This document shows positions 1-25,000 of a stretch of 64,000 nucleotides of DNA, piece by piece. This DNA is from Paragordius varius (taxonomy: Eukaryota > Animalia > Nematomorpha), in assembly GCA_964247055.1 (NCBI GenBank), contig OZ176051.1:12214001-12278000 (forward strand), written 5' to 3'. Position 1 is the first letter of the stretch. Each line of letters starts with the position of its first letter. The notes under the pieces are model-generated. The model saw only the letters and a list, made by a program, of their open reading frames with translations. It was not told where the DNA came from and ran no database searches. The translations under genes and the position numbers were made by a program.

Positions 1-944
1 TCGTCTGCAAACCTTAAATTATTGATTGTTCTCCCTCCTATTTTTACTCCAATATTTTTACCGTCCAACTTCCTCATTATCATTTCTGTGCACATATTGA
101 ACAGATAAGGGGATAAGCTACACCCTTGTCTGACTCCATTCAAGATAGGTATTTCGTCTGTGTTCCCCGCTGATGTTCTAATAATCGCTCTTTGTTTTAC
201 ATAGAGAGAGCGAATCAATCTTATTAAGTGAGACGATACCCCTAGTAACTTTAATGTTTCCCACAAGGAGTCATAGTTGATTGAATCGAAGGCTTGTCTG
301 TAATCAATAAAACACATGTATAATTCTTTCTAGAACTCTTTTGATGTTTCCATTATCCTTCTCATGTTTGAGATATGGTTTCTTGTGCTTTTTCCCTTCA
401 TAAATCCGGCTTGATTTTCTGGTATTTCTGTCTGTATGATACTGTGCATCCTGTTTTGTATTACATTTAGTAAGACCTTACTAGCGTGGCTAATAAGAGA
501 TATGTTCCGATAGTTCTCGCATTGGAGTACATCCCTTTTTTGTATATTGGGAGATATACAGATGATGTCCAGTCGTTTGGCCACTCACATGTTTCCAACA
601 CCTTTTGACATAACTTGTGTAACGTTTCTACAAAAATAGCTTTTATGAACTCTATTGGGATATTGTCTAATCCCATCGCTTTGTTGTTAGGAATTTGTTT
701 TAAGGCTAATTCAACCTCTTCTCTTAATATATCTGGATCACGTTCTTCTTCTTTAATTGCAACACCTTTGCTTGAGGAACCTGATAGAGTTTTTGGGTGT
801 ATTCCTTCCATCTTCCTCGTACTTCTGTTTGTTTGCACAATATGGTGACATTCTCTGTTTTAATCTTTTGGGATGATATAAAAGGTTTATGAGTCATTTG
901 CTTCAGTTTCTGGAACATTGGTTGCATTAATCATTTTTTGTTAT
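1..944 (-). mobile_element. RTE-clade (BovB-like) non-LTR retrotransposon, outer copy, RT part (continues off the left edge); defective
   Basis: Reverse complement of ~1476-2410. Encodes RT-proximal motifs (NYRNISLISHASKVLL, ENQAGF, ...FADD at the window edge) with frameshifts and a premature TAG. Confidence 0.95.
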
Positions 945-950
945 TTCCAC

Positions 951-3173
951 ACAATAGGAGGTTATACACATGGACCTCTCCATGTGGTAATAAGAATCAA
1001 ATTGATTACATAATATGTTCTCAAAAATGGAAATGCTCTATAATCGATACCAAAACAAGCAAAAGCAGCGATTGCTCTAGCGATCATGAACTTCTAATAA
1101 CTAAAATCAAACTTAAAATAATTAAAAATAAGGTTAAACAGATATACAGATATGACATTCGGAACATTCCAAATAGTTTTAGAACAGAAACCAAAGATAG
1201 ATTAGGAAGATTGGACAATGGATGTAGCTCAGAACAATTATGGGGAACGATAAAAATGTTGCTAATGAAGTGGCAAAAGAAAAAGTGCAGTGAGTAAAGA
1301 GGAAAGATAACAAAATATCTGAAAAGAGTATAGAGATAGCAGAAAAGAGGAGAAAAGCTAAATCAAGGGGTGATAATAAAATGGTAAAATTATATAACAA
1401 AGAATTTCAACGACAAACAAGGAAGGATTATGAAGACTTTCTTAATAAACAATGTCTGGAAGTGGATTTAAATAACAAAAAAGGATTAATGCAACCAATG
1501 TTCCAGAAACTGAAGCAAATGATTCATAAACCTTTTATATCATCACAAAAGATTAAAAAAGAGAATGGCACCATATTGTGCAAACAAACAGAAGTACGAG
1601 GAAGATGGAATACACCCAAAAACTCTATCAGGCTCCTCAAGCAAAGGTGTTGCAATTAACAGAAGAAGAACGTGATCCAGATATATTAAGAGAGGAGGTT
1701 GAATTAGCCTTAAAACAAATTCCAAACAACAAAGCGATGGGGTTAGACAATATCCCAATAGAGTTCATAAAAGCTATTCCTGTAGAAACGTTACACAAGT
1801 TATGTCAAAAGGTGTGGGAAACATGTGAGTGGCCAAACGACTGGACATCATCTGTATATCTCCCAATATACAAAAAAGGAGATGTACTCCAATGCGAGAA
1901 TTATCGGAACATATCTCTTATTAGCCACGCTAGTAAGGTCTTACTAAAAGTAATACAAAACAGAATGCACAGTATCATACAGACAGAAATACCAGAAAAT
2001 CAAGCCGGATTTATGAAGGGAAAAAGCACAAGAGACCATATCTCAAACATGAGAAGGATAATGGAAACATCAAAAGAGTTCCAGAAATAATTATACATGT
2101 GTTTTATTGATTACAGACAAGCATTCGATCCAAACTATGACTCCTTGTGGGAAACATTAAAGTTACTAGGGTTATCGTCTCACTTAATAAGATTGATTAG
2201 CTCTCTGTATGTAAAACAAAGAGCTATTATTATAACTCCAGCGGGGGACACAGACGAAATACCTATCTTGAAAGGAGTCAGACAAGGGTGTTGCTTATCC
2301 CCTTATCTGTTCAATATGTGCACAGAAATGATAATGAGGAAGTTGGATGGTAATAATATTGGAGTAAGAATAGGAGGAAGAACATTCAATAATTTAAGGT
2401 TTGCAGATGATACCACTCTTATAGCTGAAAGTGCAAATGATTTGAAGGAATTGATTGAAGAGATTCCAAAGGAAAGTTTGAGGTATGGTCTTAGGCTTAA
2501 TCCTAACAAAACCAAAATATTATGTACAGGAAAAAAGCCCACAATTATAATAGAAGGAGTACAAATAGAATATTTAAACAGTTGACGTTTTTGGGCGCAA
2601 TAATTTCAGAGGATAGGTCTTCAACTCCTGACATCAGAAAGAGAATAGGATTGGGTAGAGAAGCGATGACCATATTAAAGATTTGGAAAAACAAAAGCGT
2701 AGGAGTTGAAACCAAAAAAAGATTACTCTACTGTTTCGTTCTCCCGGTCAACACATATGGATGTGAAAGTTGGACTCTCAGAAAAAGGGACAAAGAAAGG
2801 CTCATGGCTTTTGAAAGGAGTTGCTGGCGTAGGATGCTAGGATACACCTGGAAGGATAAAATTTAGAATGAAAATCTAATTACAGAAATAAAACCTAAAA
2901 CAAACATCATGGAGATACTAAAAAGAAAGTTAACATATTTTGGTCATGTCATGCGATCGAACTCTCTGGAGAAAGATACAATGTGTGGGAAGGTAGAAGG
3001 GCAAAGGAAACGAGGCCGACCACCGATGAGGTGGTTGGATATGATAAAAGAAGAGACCAAAATGACACTGAAAGAGCTCAATATAGCGGTTATAGAAAAA
3101 AATGGAAAGAAATAGTTAAAACTATATCCAAAAAGTCGTTTACGACTTAGGAAAAACCAACCAACCCAACCAA
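951..3173 (+). mobile_element. 5'-truncated RTE-clade LINE (end of endonuclease, RT, C-terminal domain, 3' tail), inserted antisense into a copy of the same family; defective
   Basis: RT motifs GVRQGCCLSPYLFN, LRFADD, YGCESWT, KLTYFGHVMR and GRPPMRW, with stops and frameshifts. 3' stem-loop AAGTCGtttaCGACTT at 3133-3148 and a (CCAA)n tail. Flanked by the 6-bp TSD TTCCAC (945-950 and 3174-3179). Confidence 0.95.
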
Positions 3174-3179
3174 TTCCAC

Positions 3180-4310
3180 TTCCAGACATTGTTTATTAAG
3201 AAAATCTTCATAATCCTTCCTTGTTTGTCGTTGAAATTCTTTGTTATATAATTTTACCATTTTATTATCATTAATTTAGCTTATGTACTCTTTTCTGCTA
3301 TCTCTATACTCTTTTCTGATATCGATTTGTTATCTTTCCTCTTTATCTTTTGCCACTTCATTAACAACATTTTTATCGTTCCCCATAATTGTTCTGAGCT
3401 ACATCCATTCAATCTTTCTAATCTATCTTTTGTTTCTGTTCTAAAACTATTTGGAATGTTCCGAATGTCATATCTGTATATCTGTTTAACCTTATTTTTA
3501 ATTATTTTAAGTTTGATTTTGGTTATTAGAAGCTCATGATCGCTAGAGCAATCGCTGCCTTTGCTTGTTTTGGTATCGATTATAGAGCTTTTCCATTTTT
3601 GAGGATTATTATGTAATTAATTTGATTTTTATATTTACCACATGGAGAGGTCCATGTGTATAACCTCCTATTGTGTTGTGGAAACCATGTGTTGGTTATT
3701 ATCATCTCATTTATTGATCAGTGCTTCCCCGGCCTCGTTTCGTTCTCCCAATCCATATGGCCCGACTATTGAATCTACTCTACCTCTACCAACTTTGCTG
3801 TTCCAATCCCCTCCTATGATAATCATATCTCCTTACTTCGTTTCATCCAAAACTATTTGCAACGTTGCATAAAAGTCCTCTATGTCTTCTTTGGGAGCGT
3901 TTGACGTAGGAGCATAGAATACTATGTATGTGAATTTAAGTGGCTTGGCATTCAGCCTAATACTCATGATTCTGGTTGTATATGGTGTATAACTAATGAG
4001 ACTTTTATTTAATTTGTTTTTTATTAATACTACAACGCCTTCAGATTTCTGGTCATCTCTCCCCGATCTTAACAATGTATAATTTTCGTTTTGTACTTTC
4101 GCGCTACCTTTTTGCTTGGTTTCCGTTAGACCCAGTATGTCTAAGTTCAATCTTTCCATTTCCTTTTCAATTATCACCTGTTTGGTTTCTGTTAAGGAAC
4201 GTATGTTCCAGGATCCAACTTTGAAAAGTCTTGTTAGGTTTATATAGTAGAACTATTTTTTGGCAGTAATAAACGAGGGTGGTTTGCCATTGCCTTCCCT
4301 CTCACTTACC
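3180..4310 (-). mobile_element. RTE-clade LINE, outer copy, 5' part (5' UTR plus AP endonuclease)
   Basis: APE motifs VGSWNIRSL, LDILGLTETK and YAPTSNA. 3180-3690 is the reverse complement of 951-1466. A Bov-A-like 5' UTR motif GGGAAGGCAATGGCAAACCAC lies at ~4278-4298 on the minus strand. Confidence 0.92.
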
Positions 4311-5860: not shown

Positions 5861-8800
5861 TTATTTTGTCTTATTAAACAGTTTGATAAAAGCAATCATT
5901 AAAATAAACATGCCAAAAACAGTTGCTAATAGAATCCAAGTCCAAAGGGAATTTGCTTTTTGTTGAGTTGCGTCCATCAAAATATTTGCCGATTGGAGTT
6001 TGTTTATGTTATGAGACTGTTGAAGGCTTGCTTCTTCAAGAACCTTTTTAAATAGATAAATAATTTTGTTTCACGATATTATTTTTATCACTAAAAGCTG
6101 TGGTGGGTTCATATTAAGGTTTTTATGGTTTTTCAAAATGTTTTAGTAATAATATTTAAACATATATAAAATTTGATATGCGAAATAAATCGGTGTAATT
6201 TAACCAACTTTTAGAACAAAAGAGGAATAAAGGTATGGATAAATGGAAAAATATTCTAGGATGTATAAATAAACGTTATAAAGAATTATAATTTGCAGTT
6301 GTTTTCAAAATAACTAAAAAAATGTCTGAAAAAAATCCTAACATCAATGCAATTAGTTTCATTTATGGAAATTTCAAAAATCGATATACAACGAACTAAA
6401 AATTAATTTTTAAAATTTTTTTATGTAATATATCAAAGCTCCAAATGTAGTTCGGGTTATTACATATTATATTAAATTTATCAAATTGTGCGCAAACTTC
6501 ATTTTATAATTTGTTTTTTGCATTTGAGGCTTGACTCAAAAAATTCATTGATTGCAAAGTTTTAGACATTTTCATAGGTAAAAAGTTTATGAGGTTGTGA
6601 AACAAAGTCATAAAATAAAATACATATTTTTGTTTATAATCCCCTATTTACATGTATCTTTCCATTTATACTTGTAAAGCATCATTTTAATAAATTAATA
6701 ATGGGATTTTTATTGTTGTTTTACGTAAACTTTTGCTTTTTCTCAATATATTTTTTCACTAAGTGTTTTAAGATTCGTACAGTAACCGCTATTTGGTGAC
6801 ATTTTTGATACTGATAAAGTGCAAAATAACTATTTGAATACAAGGCATTCAAATGTTTTATTGTCAAAAAAATTTATAAATATAATTTTGAATATACGAT
6901 GGTGGACCTTTATTACAAAAGGCACTTATATATGATTTAAACATATTTTTATCTTCTTAAAAAAAAATAAAATATTGTCTCTAATCCTCACTAAAGAAAT
7001 TTAATTTATTCACTGATTTTTATGAATCCAATATTATTCTGTTTTGTATAATAAGCCTTAGCTTTATATCTCAAATATCAATGGCTGTAATAAATAAATA
7101 TTTATAACCGCAATCCAAATGTCAACTTACGCCTGAGGAGGTAGATGTTAGACCTATAATAGAATGTAATCAATTGCACTGCCAATGAAATTTAATTTAT
7201 GGTATATATGCACATTTTTTCAAATTTCTATTAGTTTCCATAATTAATTTCAACTAGGAGATATGTTGAAAACTTATTTTACCCGCGTATAACTCGCTTA
7301 TAAACATTACAAAATAAAATAAATTAACTAAGATTTCAAATATATAAAGCGATGTTTAGGTCCATATTGTATCAATGATGCAGATATATTTTTGAAATAT
7401 TTAATTTTTCCCTTAATGAAAGAATAAACTTAACCTTTAATTGTAATAAAGTCCTTTTAGCGTCAATAGTTGATAGTGTTCAAATAAAATCGAAAAATTT
7501 CGATCTCAGTCACATTTACAGGCACAGTGTAAAAGCCTGACGTGTCTACAAATCCACTATAGAATTTAGAGAATTAAATAAATTTGTTTTTTAGGTAATA
7601 TATCATTAGTTTCCAGTGGGTATGAAAATAAGGATTTCGGTAATCAATGTGTTAAAACACATTATAATACTTTTCAGATTATGGGTTACCACACCTGTTC
7701 CACCGATTTGTGCAACGATATTGTGGATATCAATTTACTAAATAGAACAATCATTAATTCAAACGCATTATTCACTGACAATCTCCTCCAAGCTGGCCAA
7801 ACAACAACCACACAATTGAACGCTGGAAATGGAAATCAAGCAAGTTTACAAAAAGGTCAGGATGCCTCAAACATAGCTTTAACACCATTTATGCCAACAT
7901 TGGGAAATTATATTGTAATATTTGCTGTGTATTTAATAATGTTTTTAAACTGATTCAATGTTTGAAAAATGAATTTTATCGAAAAAATCAATGATAATTG
8001 TGCTTATAGAAAAATGCAGATTCTCGTTGCTTTAGATTACCGGGCTCATTAATTAAGAAAGAAAGTATTTCACCTTTTATGGTAATTATTGATACATATC
8101 GAAAATATTATATGCTAAATTTTTGGTGAAAGCTAAATTCATCATTGTTAAAAATATCTATATCGTTCTTAGGACGTAATTATTCCAAAAAATCTTAATA
8201 GTGTTTTTTTGTATGATAGACACCCTATTAATTTCCTTTATTTTGAAAAAGGAGGAATACCCTGGGCAGTTAATTCGTTGCTAATATACTTAACTTTGTG
8301 CTGAAATCCCATTAATTTTTATAACACATTTATTTTTTCCATTACACAATTAAATTTATCAATACTTAGGTATGTTAATCAAACACACTCATCATTTATT
8401 ACCTGATTATCTTTGCGAATAAATTGGCCAGCTAAATTAACATTGGATTTAAGATTTCCAACCAGGGTTGACATTTGATCCATAAGATCATCTTGCATCG
8501 TTTTGTGTGAACTTAATAAAATGTTTTTTTCATCACCACCAACATTCTCAATACTCGGGTTAGCTATGGCATTTGGATTTCCATTGGAATAAGATTTAGT
8601 TTTACCTAATATTAATAATTTTATATCGATTTTTTCCCAGTCTCCAATATGGTTTTGAGAATTAAAAATATTTATATTAATATAATCTTTATAATCAAAA
8701 TTATATAATTATAGTCTTTTAATATCATATAATTAGTTATAATAAATCAAATGGGGGTTAATGTTAAAAATAGATAATATTGTATAAATTTACTAAATTC

Positions 8801-10210
8801 TTCCAAAAAATGATTACATGAAGGTTTAGCGAAAATACGTTATGAGCACATATTCAAAAATTTAAATTACTTTAAAATGTGGTATAAAACAATTTTTTAG
8901 TGAATAAATAATCTGTAAGTAACAAATTAAAAAAAGATGGACCCATTTAACTAAATATGGTATTTCTCGATGAAAATTTTTGTTATATTAAATACGAAAA
9001 TTATTTTTTTAAAATATTTAACATTAAATATAAAGTATTTTCTGTTTCACCATTTGAAACTCTATATTTAAGAATTTTTCAATGGTATTGAGGATCAATT
9101 CAATATGCGTTATATAACTTGGTAGCAAATTTTGGCAGTTATTGATATAAAAAATTATCAGTTTGCATTAAATTAAGAAAACTAACCAAAGCTTAAACAG
9201 TAAAAGCTCTGTAAATTGATGATTTTTTCCAGATTCAATATAATATAAAAGCAAATAATTACATATTTTATTATTATAATTATTGGGTCTATTAATAATA
9301 CTACAAATGTAAATATGTTTGTTTATTCCAGATGCAATGATAATTTTTGGTAACGGTAAAAAAATCGACAAAAATTTTTAGCTGAAAAGCATTATAGTAA
9401 ATATACCTTAATGCATATAAGATATTAAGAGTGACCTGCATAAGGTTGATATTAAAAATACATCTAATATTGTAACTTTTGATGTTTATATTTATTGATA
9501 ATAAAAGAGAGTGTTTCAGAATTCCGTTTTAAAAGGTGTTTTCAATTTTGATTTCATTTTAAAATAAATTTTTTAAATTATCGCTTCTATCTTTTTATTA
9601 AATGGGTGTAAAAATATATAATAATAACAAAAAACGGCATATAAAATATGGACAAATTTTTAATAATTATAAAGCCAATTAGTAAAATCTATCGAATATT
9701 TTGCAAAAATTGTAAAAAATTATACTCCAAGTCGTCATAAAAACTTACATTCAAAGAGGCGTTTTCGTAATTCATTGGCCTGATCTTCAATACAACTCCG
9801 ATATAATGTGTTAACTTGTAACGATAAATCATTCGGTGGTTTTTTTAAAACATATTCTACATCAATGTTTGGCTCTTTCTATAATTAATTTATAAATGTA
9901 CATCTATAAAGGGTAGTGGAATAGCATCTGCTTTCAGCAGAGATCGTAAATACTGCAACTTTGTCTTGTATTCTATTAGATTATTGTTTAACGGTTGGCT
10001 GTTTAAAGCATAATTATATTGGTTAAAATACCTACAATGTAGATTGATTGGCCATATCAATTAAATAATTATCCAATGAATGAATATACTTAACTAAATT
10101 TATAAAATTACTGCTTTTAATTTCCAATTTGGATAGTTAGGTTCAGAAACCATATCTTCGCAAATATGACATAAACGCTTAAAATTTATTTCTGATCTTG
10201 ACATGGACAT
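5861..10210 (-). CDS. USE1: Vesicle transport protein USE1 (ER Qc-SNARE), 254 aa. Exons: 10210-10112, 10088-10036, 9998-9902, 9878-9749, 8605-8403, 6043-5861
   Basis: MSMSRSEINFKRLCHICEDM...NWKLKAYIHSLDNYL matches the USE1 N-terminus. SNARE motif LSSHKTMQDDLMDQMSTLVGNLKSNVNLAGQFIRKDNQ, and C-terminal TM WTWILLATVFGMFILMIAFIKLF. All introns are GT-AG with matching phases. AATAAA overlaps the stop codon. None of these exons is in the ORF track. Confidence 0.9.
7595..7953 (+). CDS. Terminal exon of a Ly6/uPAR (three-finger)-like, probably GPI-anchored protein, nested antisense in USE1 intron 5
   Basis: Acceptor TTTTAG at 7594, then an open frame GNISLVSSGY...QCVKT...HTCSTDLCN, a polar linker and a hydrophobic tail YIVIFAVYLIMFLN*. 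No intact upstream exons were located. Confidence 0.55.
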
Positions 10211-16035: not shown

Positions 16036-19000
16036 TTATTTGCAAGCGTATTCTTCTCGTTTCTCGCTACAAGTTCTACATTCAACATAACAACACCAAT
16101 GAAATTTACAATGGCATTGCCATACTCGGTCAGTTTGAAAGGTATTGTAACCGCGGCCACAGCATAATACATCACAACTATCTTTGCCTTGGGAAGTTTT
16201 ATTACAAGATCGTCCATGAGTACCTTTTAGTATCGCAAAAATTTTTTAGTACAAAAAATGAAAATAATATTAGTATTCCTCAAGATTCGGAACGTGTATA
16301 TACCTAATGATCCAAGACTTATATCTTTTTCGCAATAATTGGGCGAGTTTTGAATGTAAACCAAGTGTCCCTTTCGTGGTTTTTTATGGATTCCTTGTAT
16401 ATGATCTGGCTGTTTAAGTTTCAAGAAAACGGGACGTTGTGTTCTATCATGCATTAAAAACAATTAATTCTACTGAGCGCATCGTATAAATGTATATTTA
16501 TATACATGGACTCAAGATTAGGATAAAAAAAGCAAATCATATTGATAACTCAAGATAATCAATTTAGTTTAATTTCATGTCGAGACATCTTATACTTTCG
16601 GTTAGGTAATGTTCAAAAGAAAAACATTCAATTATCAAAAATAAAAGATATTCTATGTTGCTGCATAATAATTTTTGGTCAAATATAAATGCTTTATTAA
16701 TAATATACCACAAACTAAATAAAATAAAAATTTTAATTTTAATGAAATTCGGCATGAGGTTATAGAGTAAACGCAAAAGAGCTGATGTCGGGTTGATAAT
16801 TTTTTTATATGTTAAAAAAGATAAAATAAATTTTTAAGGAAAGACACTGTGCATTATCTATTCTTTCTAAAGGTATTTAAAGCTTGATGTAAACATTATA
16901 AAACACCTTCAGATAATTTAATACCTTTCTTTTTATTTGTTAATGGTGAAAAATTGGTCTATATATTTGTATGTATGATTCAAATTGTAGTGATGCTAGT
17001 ATATTTATAGTCTACACTTATTTTATGATGCAAATAACGTATCTTTAGTTTATATTAGTATTCCTCATGCAAATACCCTCCTGGAATTTATATTTGTGTT
17101 GTTTGAAATAATGTAAATTGCCTTTATAGAAGATTGTATATATCAGGGGTGGCCAACGAGGTGACCGCGGTCACTTTCGTGACCGCGACAACTCAAAAAG
17201 TGACCGCCTGAAAATATTTTTTTTAAAAAATTTTTATTGATTTTATTCGGATAGTTGGCTACTTCTGAGCGAATTTAAATTTAAAATACAAAAAAATACG
17301 GTTTAAATTAAAAAAAACGTCTAAGAAAAGGGTGAAAAAAAAATTCATATGTTTTGGAGCATTTGCATAAAACTTAAAATCAGTCATTTCCTCTGAATAT
17401 ATCAAAACTTTGAGCAAAGCTTATTCATAAATCAGAAGCATAATTGTGAAGTTAGATTTGATTTGATACACCAAAAGTAGGTTTTTAAAACTTATATTTT
17501 AGAATGAGCCAAAAAAAGTTGTACAGATACAAGAAAGATTGGGAGCATAAATACTTTTTTATTATGATAAATGAAACATGCACCTGTCTAATATACAATA
17601 GTACTGTTGCTTTGCCCAAAAAGTCAAATATTGAAAGACATTATAGATCTCTGCATCCACATTACTCCAAAAACTACCCCTTACAAACTCAAGAACGCAA
17701 CATTAAAGTAAAGGAATTAAAAGAACAATTATCCGCCTCACAAAATAGCATACTTAAATACAACAAAGACTATAAAAATGCTACGATTGCTTCATTCAAG
17801 GTAGCGGAAATACTCATTCGGAACAATAAGCCATTCCAAGATGGTGAAATATTTAAAGAAGCCTTTATTAGCGCTTGTGATATTTTATTTGAAAATTTTG
17901 ATAACATAAATAATATTATGACAGCTATTAAAAGCATAAGCTTATCGAGAAATACCGTTATGCGCAGGGCTGAAGATATTAGTAATAATCTTGATGAAAT
18001 TTTACATGAAAATATTAATAACTGTATTTTTTTTCCTTGCAACTCGATGAGTCCACCGATTATGTTGGAATCGCCCAATTATGCATTTTTATTCGTATGA
18101 TATTTAGTGATTTATCTGCAAAGGAGGAATTATTTATAATACCTCTCCACGAACGAACCAGAGGGCAGGATATTTTTGATTCTTTTTATAAATTTATCAC
18201 AGATACGAAACTTCCCATCGTAAAACTCGCATCTATAACTACTGATGAAGCTCCAGCTATGATTGGCGTTAACAACAGCTTTATCGCTTTATGTAAAAAT
18301 CACAGTGCATTTCCCAAGTTCATTGATTACCATTGTATAATCCATAATCAAGTTTTATGTTCAAAAGTTTTAAAATACCATCATGTAATGAACCCCTGTT
18401 TTAAAATTGTTAACGCCATTCGAACAAAAAGCTTGTCCCGCCGCCAATTTCGAATTTTGTTAAATGAGTGCGGCGTGGAATATGGAGAACTTTTATTACA
18501 TACTGATGTAAGGTGGTTGAGTCGTGCCGCATTTTTAATTAAATTTAGGCAACTTTTACCACAAATAGAAATTTTTTTTAGAGAATTCTAAATTTTCATA
18601 CCCTGAATTGAAAGATCAAGATTGGCTGCTTGATCTTGCATTTTTATGCGATATCACGGAAAAATTGCATAAATTAAACATCCAATTACAAGGAAAAGAT
18701 AAAACAATAATAGATATGATGGGTGCTTTACAATCTTTTAAGGAAACACTAACAGTAGTAGAAACACAATTAAAAAACCGAGATTTAAAACATATTTTTA
18801 ATCTGGCAGCGGTGTCTGAAAAAATAGAGAATCTCTCTTTTGAAAAATATGCAGATGATATTGGTCTGCTTATTAATGATTTTGAAAAACGATTTTCATC
18901 TATAACTCTAAGACATCGCTATTTTTTTATCTTGCCCATTTAATAATATTAATAATGTTGAATATATTGCTCAAAAACTCAGCCACTTTCTTGGTGTACC

Positions 19001-22000
19001 AAATTTAGCAGAGTTGGAAGAGGAATTAATAAATGTTGAATGCGATATCCATCTAAAATCATTAGGATCAGATATATATAAATTTATAAATAAAGATAAA
19101 TACCCCCATATTTGGAAAACCGCTGCATTTTTCAATTCTTTTTTTGGCACATATTTATGTGAATCGGCTTTTTCAATTATGAATGCTATTAAAACTAAAC
19201 AGAGGTCACAATTAACTAATAAACATTTAGAATCATGTTTGAGAATTGCTTTGACTTCATTTGAACCTAATTTAGATAAACTTTCTGAATTTTTTCGCAG
19301 TCGGGCGTTTTAAATATTTTTTTCTTTATTAAATATGAATGTTTATCGAGTTGAAATTTCGCTTAGGAAAAAGCCGATTTACTAAAAAATATGTGGATAG
19401 AATTAAAACTGATACAATTTTAATGTACTCTTATTTATGTTCAAATTATGGTTCTAAATTGGAATGCTATTTTTTATTTCTTTTATTTCTTTTATTTTTT
19501 GTATCACAATGTATTATCCCCTGTAATTTCAAATGCATTGTTTAAATTTTTATATTGTAAAATTTCATATGATAGAAATTTAATATATAAATATTTTGAA
19601 GTGTTTTATGTTGGTTAAAAATTTAGGTAGTTAATAACCCGTTGTCTTTTAATTAAAATTATTTTTGTATTTGGTTGAGATAAAAAAACTACAATTTTAA
19701 AATGGTTTAAACAAGTCACTCTAATCTGTAAAGCAGGTATATACATCATTTAAAGTGTTGATTGAGTTTTTTGATAAATATTTCTGGGTGACCGCGAACT
19801 CTTTTTTTAACAAAAAAGCCAAAAAAAAGCTCCAAAAAAAGTGTAGCCACCCCTGGTATATATATATATATATATATCGCTCTATTTTTCGAATAAATGC
19901 ACTATCGTTTGCATACGCTAGTTAATATTAAGTTTGAGGAATACGTTGATTATATGACAATTATAAGAGCTAACGAGATTCCAGTAAGCGACCAAGCCCT
20001 CAGAACAACTCGCTTATGTCGGTCTGTTGGTTGTGGGCAAAAGTCAACGATTGTATACGAAAAAAATAAGGCACAACATGGAGCGATTAAGACAACGGGC
20101 CTAAAAAAAATTTATCCCACAAAATCGAAAAATCGATTTGATTGAGGAACGTGTTCGCAAGGCCTTCGTCATTGGTTTACGGCAACGTCAACCGGAAATC
20201 GATATACATTCGAGGCACCCCGATGCCGAGATCAACGGGCAACCCGCGCCACTAAAAACGATAATGAATCTCGCACTAGCACACGAAGCTAGGGCCGGCC
20301 CTAAAAACAATAATTATAATACCAATCATGGCAATGGTATTAATTTAAATTGATTACAACACAACAATAATATTATGGCCATGCGTTAACGACGGCCAGC
20401 AGCAGCTAACACATTCATGCAATCGTTGTAGGCGTAGCCATGAACCAAACATCTGTCCTGCCCGGAACCGCAAGCAATAAATGCGGAAAACTCAACCACT
20501 TCGCTAAAATATATAGATGAAAAAACGCTGCCATGAGTATGTTCAACCCCCAAAATTATTGAAAGTAATGCTAATGTCACCATGGACATTAAAAATGATG
20601 ATAAACAATACAGAACGAGAATTTATCGACACGGCCTATATCATGGTAATCAACTTTGAGACATGTAGTTAGTTGGTAAGCCAAACCTAAACCCATACCG
20701 CCAGTAAAAGCCTACAATAATTGTATAGTACCACTATTGGGAGTAACAACGGTTACAATGCTAATGAATGAAAACTTGGGGAATGCAGAATTTTGTGTAC
20801 TGAAAGAGTAACAATGCACTCATCTGTAGCTTGGATTGGATCACGAAATTCAACATCGACATTCCTAAAGTACAAATTAATTTTCTTAAATTTGATAACA
20901 TTGATGAAAATATTCCTAATCTATTAAAAAATAGGTTGGCAGTGTGGCGGTAAAAATTGTGTAGCATCCAACGCCTCCACCAAGGTTGTCGACTGGCGCT
21001 TCCCTTAAGAGCAAGAGAGTCGCTAAGACTGCAGAAGTTAGACATTTTGGAAGCAAATTGCAATCTTACACCGCTTACATGGATTACGCAAATCGTCGAC
21101 ATATTGAAAGCGAACGGAGAGCTGAGAATCTGTAACGACTTTAGAGTCACGATCAACAACACGGACTATACCATATCATCCCAACTTTTTATGTTGGTAA
21201 GTACGATTGATGAAAGACAAACTTTCAGTAAGATTAATCCTAAGGCGCCTAACTCCAAATGCCGATAGCTAAATAATCGCAACACCACCTAACGATTTCA
21301 ACGCACAAAGAATTTTTCCGCTATAAAAGGATGCCTTTAGGACAAACAGCACCGATAATATTTTGGCTAGTCATGGATTAGGCTATGACTGTCCCGTGGT
21401 ACTTGTGCATATTGATGATAGCTGGCAAGTCTGAACAGGAACAAAATCTAATGTTTTAAATTGGTTAGAAATGACAGGTTTTAAATCAAGAAAAGATAAA
21501 ATAAAAATTGGTGAATTTTATTAAATTATCTGGGATTTGAAATAAGTAATAAAGGTATAGTACCTTTAATAATAAAGAAAAGCAATTCATGATTTTAACC
21601 AGTGGATTAAAAATCTTTAAGTAGTTTTATAATTTTTAATATTCCATGGAAAATTTATACCCAGGCTTCGATTGCTTTTAGTTGATTATAGTTTAACAAG
21701 TAGGGACTTAAATGGAACTGGTCGGAAAAACACGGGAAAAGTTGAAAAGCAGCAAAGGAATTGTTAAGTTTACAAGTATTTTTATCACCATCCAATCTGG
21801 ATAGAAAAGTAGTAATTGAAATCGAGATGGTGGAAGGAAAACCTATTTATGGTTTCAGAAAGTGACCGCAAAACTGAATTACTTTACAATAGAAAGGGAA
21901 CTCCAGGCTATTGTTTTTGCATTAAAAATAATAACTTCGTATATGGTAGAATTAAAGTTTTGACATCACCACTGTTTAGATTGATCACTAGGGATAAAAT

Positions 22001-25000
22001 TCAGAATGCGAAAGTTAAATATGGGTTAACCGACTGAATGATTATCAATTATAATTAAGTTATCAGGCGAGTCCGAAAAATTAAACCCAATTATTTGTCA
22101 ATAAGCCCCGGGAAATGTTGATACAACTGATATGGTTTACATGGTAACGAAACATATAAGGTTTCTAAATTGTCATAGCGTTTATTTAAATCGAGATGAA
22201 ATCCGGAGAGAGACAGTTAAGGATAAAATCTTGCCAAAGTTATCAAGGCGATTACTAATCAATATTGGAGCGATTTTGAGTTGGTGGTTTATAACAGATA
22301 AGAAGAATTTGCGTCAATACGGTTAAGTTTAAACGATCGAATCATTATTCCGTAAAGTTTACAGGACGTGGTTAATTATTTGCACAGCGGTCATAATAAT
22401 TGAATGCCATGAGAGCGATGGCAGGGTATGCATGGATTTTATTGATCCATCCCATTGCTTGTAGACATTTACTGTTTATAAAACATGTAATGTTTCTGCC
22501 GATTGCCGTTCGTTAAGTTTCATTGGAACACATTCAATAGTTCTGCCTTTTATCGTTTTCGCAATAATATTTATCAGAAGAAAATCTCTTTCACTTTAAA
22601 ATGACAGAAATTTTGGTTTCATGTTCTAATCGATCGAGCATGTTGATTATATGATACTAATACTTATGAATTTTAACAGCCTTTTCCTTCTGATGAAAAA
22701 GTCATACATGCCGAAAATGTTCTTTTTCAAGCATAATTGGACTTGATTACGGATTGATAAAATAGTTAGACACTAGTTTTTGACAGTCAATTTCAAGGTG
22801 TTTCAGATGATTGAAACGTCAGTAATAAATTAATCGCCTGCCTATACTTCCAAGGTTTTCTCGAACCGGTGATGACTTATGATTACACGAAGAAAAATCG
22901 GCCAATATTGGCTCTTCAATTTTAGGAAAAACCCATTTATTGTTATACAAGGTAAAAGATTAATTATTAGATTTTAATTTAGTAAATCATTATAATAAAT
23001 TAGTTTTATTACTTAATACCTTATAACTTTTCGCCTAATAGATTTTCCCCGATTTTGATTTCAATTGGGCCAAATAATAGATAATTTTATATTGTAAATA
23101 TCGCATAATGTTTATTGTATCACTCACTATATAATAAAAATTATAGCTTTAGATCATATTTTATCAGCGAATATTTGATATTTTTTGTTTAATCAGATCT
23201 CGCAGCTATCCCAACTACTCGGGATAAACCGTAAATAGAGACTTAATTATCTATTTTAATATTAAATTTCAACAAAAAACTTTTTGAATATATAACTCAA
23301 TTTAGACTTGCGCTAAATCATATACAGATTGTTATTTTTATACATTTTATTTTTTAACTAATGTATATTGTTCACCAGTTATAAAAATATGTAAACATTG
23401 TTATACCTCAATATAATTTATCATAAATTTGTGTTGTATATTGGTTAAAAATATTTTTTACCAATATTTTCGGATTCCAATATTTAACACTAAATTACAA
23501 TTTCCTGTTCGCGGTGACATTATGGGGTAGTTTTTGAACCAGAGATTATAAACAAACTATTTTGATAGTTGTTTTGGTCAAAAATTTAATTATCAACTCT
23601 CTTCTCCTGTGGGATAAACAAATCTAAATATCTTACAGTTTTTTAACTTCTATATAGTCTCAATTCAAAGCTTTAAACGATTGGAACAAACAGCTGATAA
23701 TATCATAAAATATTAAATGCTGGTAAATTTTAATTTGAAAGCTTACCAAAGTTAATAACTTATACTTTTATACCATAATACATAGTTGTTTGCGTGTTAA
23801 ATAAATACTAAAAAATGGCGGCGAATTCGATATAAATATTTATTAAAATTTTGCATTTATTTGAAAAAAAATGTATCATGCGCCTATTAAAGAAAGCGTA
23901 AATTAAAATTTTACAATAGTAATAATAACTAAATTTTGAATCGTTGGATTATACGGCTAACTTAAAAATTATAAAGTGTTAATAGCACTTAGATCAAATA
24001 GAAAGGCTGATTATATCAAATAATTATTTTAATTTTCCCTCCAAAACTGAAAATATATTTATTTTTCATCGAACATAATATTTGCCGTAAAATTCTAAAA
24101 AAAAATTACAGGCTCAAAATCTGATATGAGCATTTTCTGACGATTTTATATTAAAAGTTATTTTGTTTAATGCGCCTAAAAAACCTTAGATGCTGATTTT
24201 AAAACTAACTTCATATCCAAACCACAATGTGTTGAAATCAATAAAAAAATTATAACCATTTTTTTTATATTTTACACCTTTGCTAATGTATAACAAGAAT
24301 ATTACCCTATAAAAGGCTCACAACAAAAAAAATGTTACTAATTCTAGTAAACGCAACATAATCCAAATAATTAGAATAATCCCGCATTGTCGACAGTATT
24401 TTCTAAAAATTTTCAATAGGAGATAATTTTTTATTAGAAACTAATTATAAATTTAAAATAGTTTTTTATGCTAATATAGACTATAAGTGACGCCTTACAT
24501 TCGAGAACAAGACAAAAATAAATGCAATTCTGATAGGAATTACGACCTTTTTATTATTTTCCTCTAAATATTAACTCTATAATGGGGCAAATATTTTTTG
24601 GTAAAATAAAACATTATAAAAACTTAAGGATCGCAAAAAATAGAAAGCTTATCAAGTTCCATCCTACAGTCGCATACAAATTTACCTTCGATCCTTAATA
24701 GGTTCAACCTGTTTAGCTTGATCGTATTTTTTCTTAAGGACATCCCCTATCCGCCGAAAAGATGGCAAAATTACCCAACAAGTTTTAAGGGTACAAGAGC
24801 CTGAAACTCCGTGACATTTGCAATCCACATCGGCATTTACCCTAAGCGTCTTTAAATAAACAAAATATAAATATTTTAGTTAATAAGGTAAATTATAATC
24901 GGTTGTTTATGTTTAAAATGATGGCAAAAATTAAATAATAAAAGACCTAATGGTAAAATAAAAAAACCTTTCTTCCCACTCGATTATTGTGCAAATTCAT

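Follow-up and report, generated by a model that had tools for sequence, protein, structure and literature searches.

The first three introns of USE1, a membrane-traffic gene, in what is probably a third animal lineage with introns below 30 nt, measure 23, 37 and 23 nt, and on the evidence of the DNA they are very probably genuine spliceosomal introns. They stand at the 5' end of a gene whose other two introns span 1,143 and 2,359 nt. All coordinates below refer to the window, the whole 64,000-nt stretch of DNA that was analysed.

Boundaries of the three ultra-short introns

The preliminary description of this DNA had held that the USE1 frame can be assembled only by removing GT-AG segments of 23, 37 and 23 nt, and all three lie on the minus strand where it had placed them: intron 1 at 10111-10089 (phase 0), intron 2 at 10035-9999 (phase 2) and intron 3 at 9901-9879 (phase 0). 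Its claim that every retained version meets a stop also held, as all seven retention combinations terminate at codon 37, 52 or 87. Retention of intron 1 or intron 3 brings in an in-frame TAA and that of intron 2 an immediate in-frame TAG, whereas removal of the tiny introns restores a frame of family length (254 aa).

For intron 1, a single GT lies between the Pfam-anchored end of exon 1 and the stop, and the nearer AG at 10094 leads into the wrong frame. Intron 3 has a second in-frame acceptor at 9873, which would give a 29-nt alternative. Acceptor choice generally favours the first AG, and one preceded by T rather than G; the 23-nt form is therefore favoured, its AG coming first and having T, not G, before it. 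The donors of introns 1 to 3 read GTAATT, GTAGGT and GTACAT.

The two 23-nt introns (10111-10089 and 9901-9879, minus strand) have 17 of 23 letters in common, including a 10-nt core at positions 6-15. Their likeness (interior match P about 0.005, post hoc) could reflect a shared motif, local conversion or chance, and the core is absent from the tiny introns of TUFM, another gene of the window. Inspection of the tiny introns revealed no common branch-point motif, but A-rich middles.

Structure and identity of the USE1 gene

The spliced USE1 model comprises six exons on the minus strand and 765 nt, encoding 254 aa with one stop, at the end. Exon 1 (10112..10210, 99 nt) begins with an ATG at 10210, followed by a second at 10204, and its residues 5-32 align with positions 1-29 of the Pfam Use1 profile (PF09753, E 9e-4). 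Exon 2 (10036..10088, 53 nt) and exon 3 (9902..9998, 97 nt, 35% GC) fit in frame and length, and exon 4 (9749..9878, 130 nt) ends at a full-consensus GTAAGT donor. Intron 4 (8606..9748, 1,143 nt, phase 1), whose acceptor was assigned solely from the frame, precedes exon 5 (8403..8605, 203 nt), which encodes the SNARE helix and matches profile positions 144-186 (E 5e-7). Beyond intron 5 (6044..8402, 2,359 nt, phase 0), exon 6 (5861..6043, 183 nt including the stop) encodes the end of that helix and a membrane anchor, matching positions 188-243 (E 2e-7). Profile positions 186 and 188 thus stand on either side of intron 5 with no gap. The long introns named in the preliminary description, namely these two and Wnt7 intron 4 of 8,242 nt, are all of the lengths given there.

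Three exon matches in profile order, covering an N-terminal Use1 motif, the SNARE helix and a C-terminal anchor, place the gene in the USE1 family. Pfam searches were run exon by exon, and each match lies below the whole-protein cut-off. The order of its domains, its C-terminal anchor and its length of 254 aa resemble those of the known ER Qc-SNARE USE1/p31 (PF09753). The present gene is divergent, in that its single exons reach no homologue at E 0.001. Exons 2-4 found no match of their own in the exon-by-exon searches, including Pfam and Atlas; their codon usage leans towards coding, short of significance (P=0.09), and is only suggestive. With the ORFs of exons 5 and 6 as queries, a word search, length-limited and blind to full-length USE1, returned no orthologue, and no homologue emerged from metagenome scans, PDB, Atlas or exact look-ups of ten window ORFs. 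P0121, the lone HMMER match for exon 5 among the representatives, was rejected, as it has no Use1 domain. In vertebrate USE1, the phases of the three leading coding introns are presumably 0, 2 and 0, near the codons seen here, which would match the present model, and the last coding exon, which we take to be 183 nt, would match exon 6.

Intron 5 also contains an opposite-strand ORF (7582-7950, plus strand) that resembles the last exon of a nested gene. It encodes a CxxDxCN motif of Ly6/LU-like type and a hydrophobic, GPI-like tail, has no Pfam match, and lies downstream of a signal-peptide-like stretch near 7030-7100.

Other introns of the window

Across USE1, TUFM and Wnt7, 19 introns were annotated, all within the window. 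In TUFM, whose protein is highly conserved, a 25-nt GT-AG segment lies at 47833-47809 on the minus strand. The exon ending at 47834 matches PDB chain 7a5g_Z to residue 79 and the next full codon corresponds to residue 81, while the same junction falls between residues 34 and 36 of 6i8r_A; both of these solved EF-Tu chains therefore fit without a gap, with one split codon across the intron. A further TUFM candidate upstream, at 48025-48003 (minus strand), measures 23 nt, although a different choice of ends would make it 41 nt, and the remaining TUFM introns range from 117 to 1,002 nt.

The 19 lengths comprise 23, 23, 23, 25 and 37 nt, four values of 80-179 nt and ten of 693-8,242 nt, with a median of 693 nt and four introns below 30 nt. 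None falls between 38 and 79 nt, unless the first TUFM intron is 41 nt. Tiny introns lead in both genes, as the first three of five in USE1 and the leading pair of nine in TUFM, a placement with a post hoc joint probability of 0.003. Short and long introns (five and 14, respectively) are alike in their weak donors and AT-rich acceptors: G occupies position +5 in one of the five short and three of the 14 long introns, hence in 4 of 19, and six of the 19 begin with GTT.

Alternative gene models and base errors

The frame itself was tested by listing every path that uses at most three GT-AG introns between the start codon and the last base of exon 4. The model with three tiny introns is the longest of 481 open solutions (126 aa), and only 1.2% of 500 ATG-started non-coding controls of 462 nt keep at least 379 nt. 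Its spacing also agrees with the family, residues 32 to 152 of the model covering 120 aa where profile positions 29 to 144 cover 115. A shorter protein with longer, conventional introns (62-139 nt) could in principle be read from the same DNA, as 156 open solutions use introns of at least 40 nt and exons 2-4 are without database matches of their own. However, the best of these reaches 87 aa where the tiny-intron model has 126, and it ends exon 1 at residue 20, whereas the Pfam match extends to residue 32; if the true donor is kept, 81 aa are obtained. With about 81 residues between the Pfam anchors, such a model is about 34 short, whereas family spacing asks for about 120. Longer-intron models were rejected on both counts, too few residues between the anchors and a truncated exon 1 match, and we regard them as very improbable.

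The breaks could also be artefacts within otherwise continuous coding DNA, either indels from the assembly or frameshifts in a gene that is decaying. Introns 1 and 2 can each be mimicked by one base error, the frame being opened by one inserted base in the former and by one deleted base in the latter. When every single-base indel was tried across intron 3, however, none opened the frame, and a single-indel artefact was therefore rejected as the whole explanation. All three breaks, moreover, fall in low-GC GT-AG segments, GC amounting to 12.7% within the tiny introns and to 32% in exons (P=1.5e-4), and the remainder of USE1 is intact. When an indel is placed at random in real exons, a GT-AG segment of 18-40 nt that restores the frame lies alongside it in 29% of cases, so that three such coincidences together with the GC drop are unlikely. 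An error reading of the TUFM segment would likewise add about 8 residues where the solved structures allow none. Indels or gene decay thus appear about as improbable as longer introns, and the three segments are very probably excised by the spliceosome.

Proposed recognition of the tiny introns

The explanation that we consider likely as a whole is that the first three USE1 introns are ordinary U2-type GT-AG introns, shortened by deletion to 23, 37 and 23 nt, and that the major spliceosome would recognise each of them by intron definition. The recognition signals would then amount to little beyond GT(A) and AG, and an A within the AT-rich interior, roughly 10-17 nt from the 5' end, would serve as branch point. 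Such a tight lariat geometry is possible, since Stentor introns branch at position 10-11 (PMC9505925). In human cells, the distance from donor to branch point must be at least about 46 nt (PMC11291888), and some relaxation of early assembly is for this reason implied, by which this lineage would accept far closer spacing. As weak donors are common to long and short introns, this tolerance is probably general to all introns rather than the property of a separate machine.

Transposon insertion may explain, at least in part, the length of the later USE1 introns, in keeping with the transposon remains inside the 8.2-kb Wnt7 intron, and the long introns would probably be spliced by exon definition. 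An early stop is a well-established trigger of nonsense-mediated decay. Retained tiny introns give early stops, and unspliced USE1 mRNA would therefore probably be removed by this pathway.

The strong form of the inference in the preliminary description, that snRNP or branch-point machinery may be altered, is conceivable though in our judgement unlikely: the introns would be real, but specialised or clearly altered machinery would process the tiny ones apart from the route used by long introns. Candidates would include assembly that is U2AF-independent or U1-light, a variant snRNA, and truncation of SF3b or of branching factors. A donor-to-branch distance of at most about 17 nt, compared with a human minimum of about 46 nt (PMC11291888), would suit such a division, as would the gap from 37 to 80 nt among the 19 introns and the post hoc likeness of the two 23-nt introns noted above. 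There are precedents, too: Stentor has branching factors with a divergent active site (PMC9505925), and a U2AF-independent, RBM17-dependent route is reported for human short introns (PMC8363638). Against this, weak donors and AT-rich acceptors are common to the short and long introns, in myxozoans with introns of 22-27 nt the branch-point region of U2 is conserved and U2AF1/2 are retained (PMC13644364), and no altered components are apparent in the window itself.

Two further routes concern the chemistry of removal. The introns are not of the U12 type, their donors differing from RTATCCTT and a strong branch consensus being absent. XBP1/HAC1 carries a 23-nt intron in flies and nematodes, and USE1 is an ER protein; removal of the 23-nt pieces by IRE1 cleavage and ligation is nevertheless extremely improbable. 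Its appeal lies in that length coincidence and in the ER function of USE1 only, whereas no junction bears the CNG-CNG cleavage motif, no two-hairpin structure or significant hairpin was found (z -1.1 to +1.1), and the ends are canonical GT-AG, and this type of removal was rejected. Intron definition by a U2-type spliceosome, probably relaxed for all introns, would best account for the USE1 introns.

Comparison with known short-intron systems

A survey of 51 animals located introns below 30 nt in myxobolids and one dicyemid only, left the recognition of such introns open and predicted more cases (Hadjez et al. 2026, PMC13644364). USE1 introns 1 and 3 lie under this limit, intron 3 being at most 29 nt, and intron 2, at 37 nt, lies above it. 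As in the USE1 case, the introns of myxobolids and Dicyema japonicum are GT-AG introns of 22-27 nt with signals of about GTa and AG, weak A runs before the AG, and short introns beside short neighbours, and donors are likewise weak in myxobolids (PMC13644364). In the present small sample (five short, 14 long), splice signals are reduced to GTa and AG. Tiny introns are a minority here, with 4 of 19 below 30 nt and a window median of 693 nt, compared with genome-wide medians of 22-27 nt in the myxobolid and Dicyema class, and all sub-30-nt introns of the window lead their genes, unlike those of that class.

What stands of the preliminary description is that the ultra-short introns are very probably real, two of them below 30 nt, and occur beside introns in the kilobase range; its restriction of sub-30-nt introns to compact genomes was overstated. 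Myxobolid genomes of 188-206 Mb hold long introns together with tiny ones, as seen here (PMC8855578): Thelohanellus kitauei has 188.5 Mb, with a mean intron of 240 bp and a median of 22 bp, and Myxobolus honghuensis has 206 Mb and a mean intron of 507 bp (PMC13644364, PMC8855578). Since both myxobolids and flukes mix tiny and long introns, intron and exon definition within one genome are not new either.

Flukes and cestodes provide a second point of comparison. The microintrons of Opisthorchis felineus are adjacent and clustered at the 5' end, lack a polypyrimidine tract and occur beside multi-kb introns, as here, and intron definition has been proposed for them (PMC6530080). Their lengths peak at 37 nt, alongside a 3-kb peak, whereas two of the three USE1 introns have 23 nt, and their splice sites are closer to consensus than those of the window. 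Default length thresholds in annotation under-call microintrons (PMC6530080), and it is plausible, as had been proposed, that standard predictors would miss the present introns. Ciliates use AT-rich GTA...AG introns of about 25 nt in Paramecium (PMC5014332) and of 15-16 nt in Stentor (PMC9505925); ciliate genomes contain almost only tiny introns, whereas an animal with mixed lengths is described here. The USE1 locus resembles both the myxobolid and the fluke classes, being shorter than the latter and, unlike the former, a minority class. It is one more example of the ultra-short class and adds no mechanism.

Host lineage and wider meaning

Indirect evidence makes a myxozoan or Dicyema host unlikely. 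The window contains an intact Wnt7 ligand and kb introns, and myxozoans mostly lack Wnt ligands (PMC8855578). GC content in the window is 24-37% per 2-kb bin, again with kb introns, as against 36.7% GC and a mean intron of 38 bp in Dicyema (PMC6736024). All named matches of Wnt7 are to Wnt-7b or Wnt among the best 120 matches listed, which include no named hairworm, and the top match is a Logan contig of about 63% identity. The horsehair worm Gordionus montsenyensis has 26.93% GC and 63.79% repeats (10.1101/2023.06.26.546503), and the window is similarly low in GC and rich in transposons. The literature that we searched contained no account of short introns in a hairworm, and the Gordionus genome preprint (10.1101/2023.06.26.546503) does not mention introns.

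A tentative reading, taken as a whole less likely than not, is that the USE1 host is a third animal lineage, probably a horsehair worm and hence the first ecdysozoan, that splices 23-nt introns. It would do so in a transposon-rich genome and exclusively at gene 5' ends, through a recent change in early assembly that shortened the least workable distance between donor and branch point from about 46 nt to about 12 nt, with exon definition of multi-kb introns kept. If this were true, the assembly change could be found through hairworms with longer introns at the same sites. As tiny and multi-kb introns occur in one gene, the limit that the animal spliceosome sets on minimum intron length could be probed on a single transcript. 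For annotation of this genome, the shortest intron allowed should be set to 20 nt or less; otherwise 5' exons would be lost and genes perhaps counted as missing.

Further features of the window concern Wnt7 and its repeats. Wnt7 (28087-16036, minus strand) has at least five introns (747, 1,604, 118, 8,242 and 80 nt) and, near 27890-27650, a long insertion rich in S, T, Q and N. Rfam yielded no match within the window. The 8.2-kb Wnt7 intron holds transposon remains on the plus strand (17489-19310 and 20105-22323), comprising a decayed hAT/SPIN-like transposase with a Spin-doc zinc finger (Pfam PF18658) together with remnants of retroelements. Positions 1-4252 carry several decayed LINE copies that are nested, with endonuclease and reverse-transcriptase pieces on both strands.
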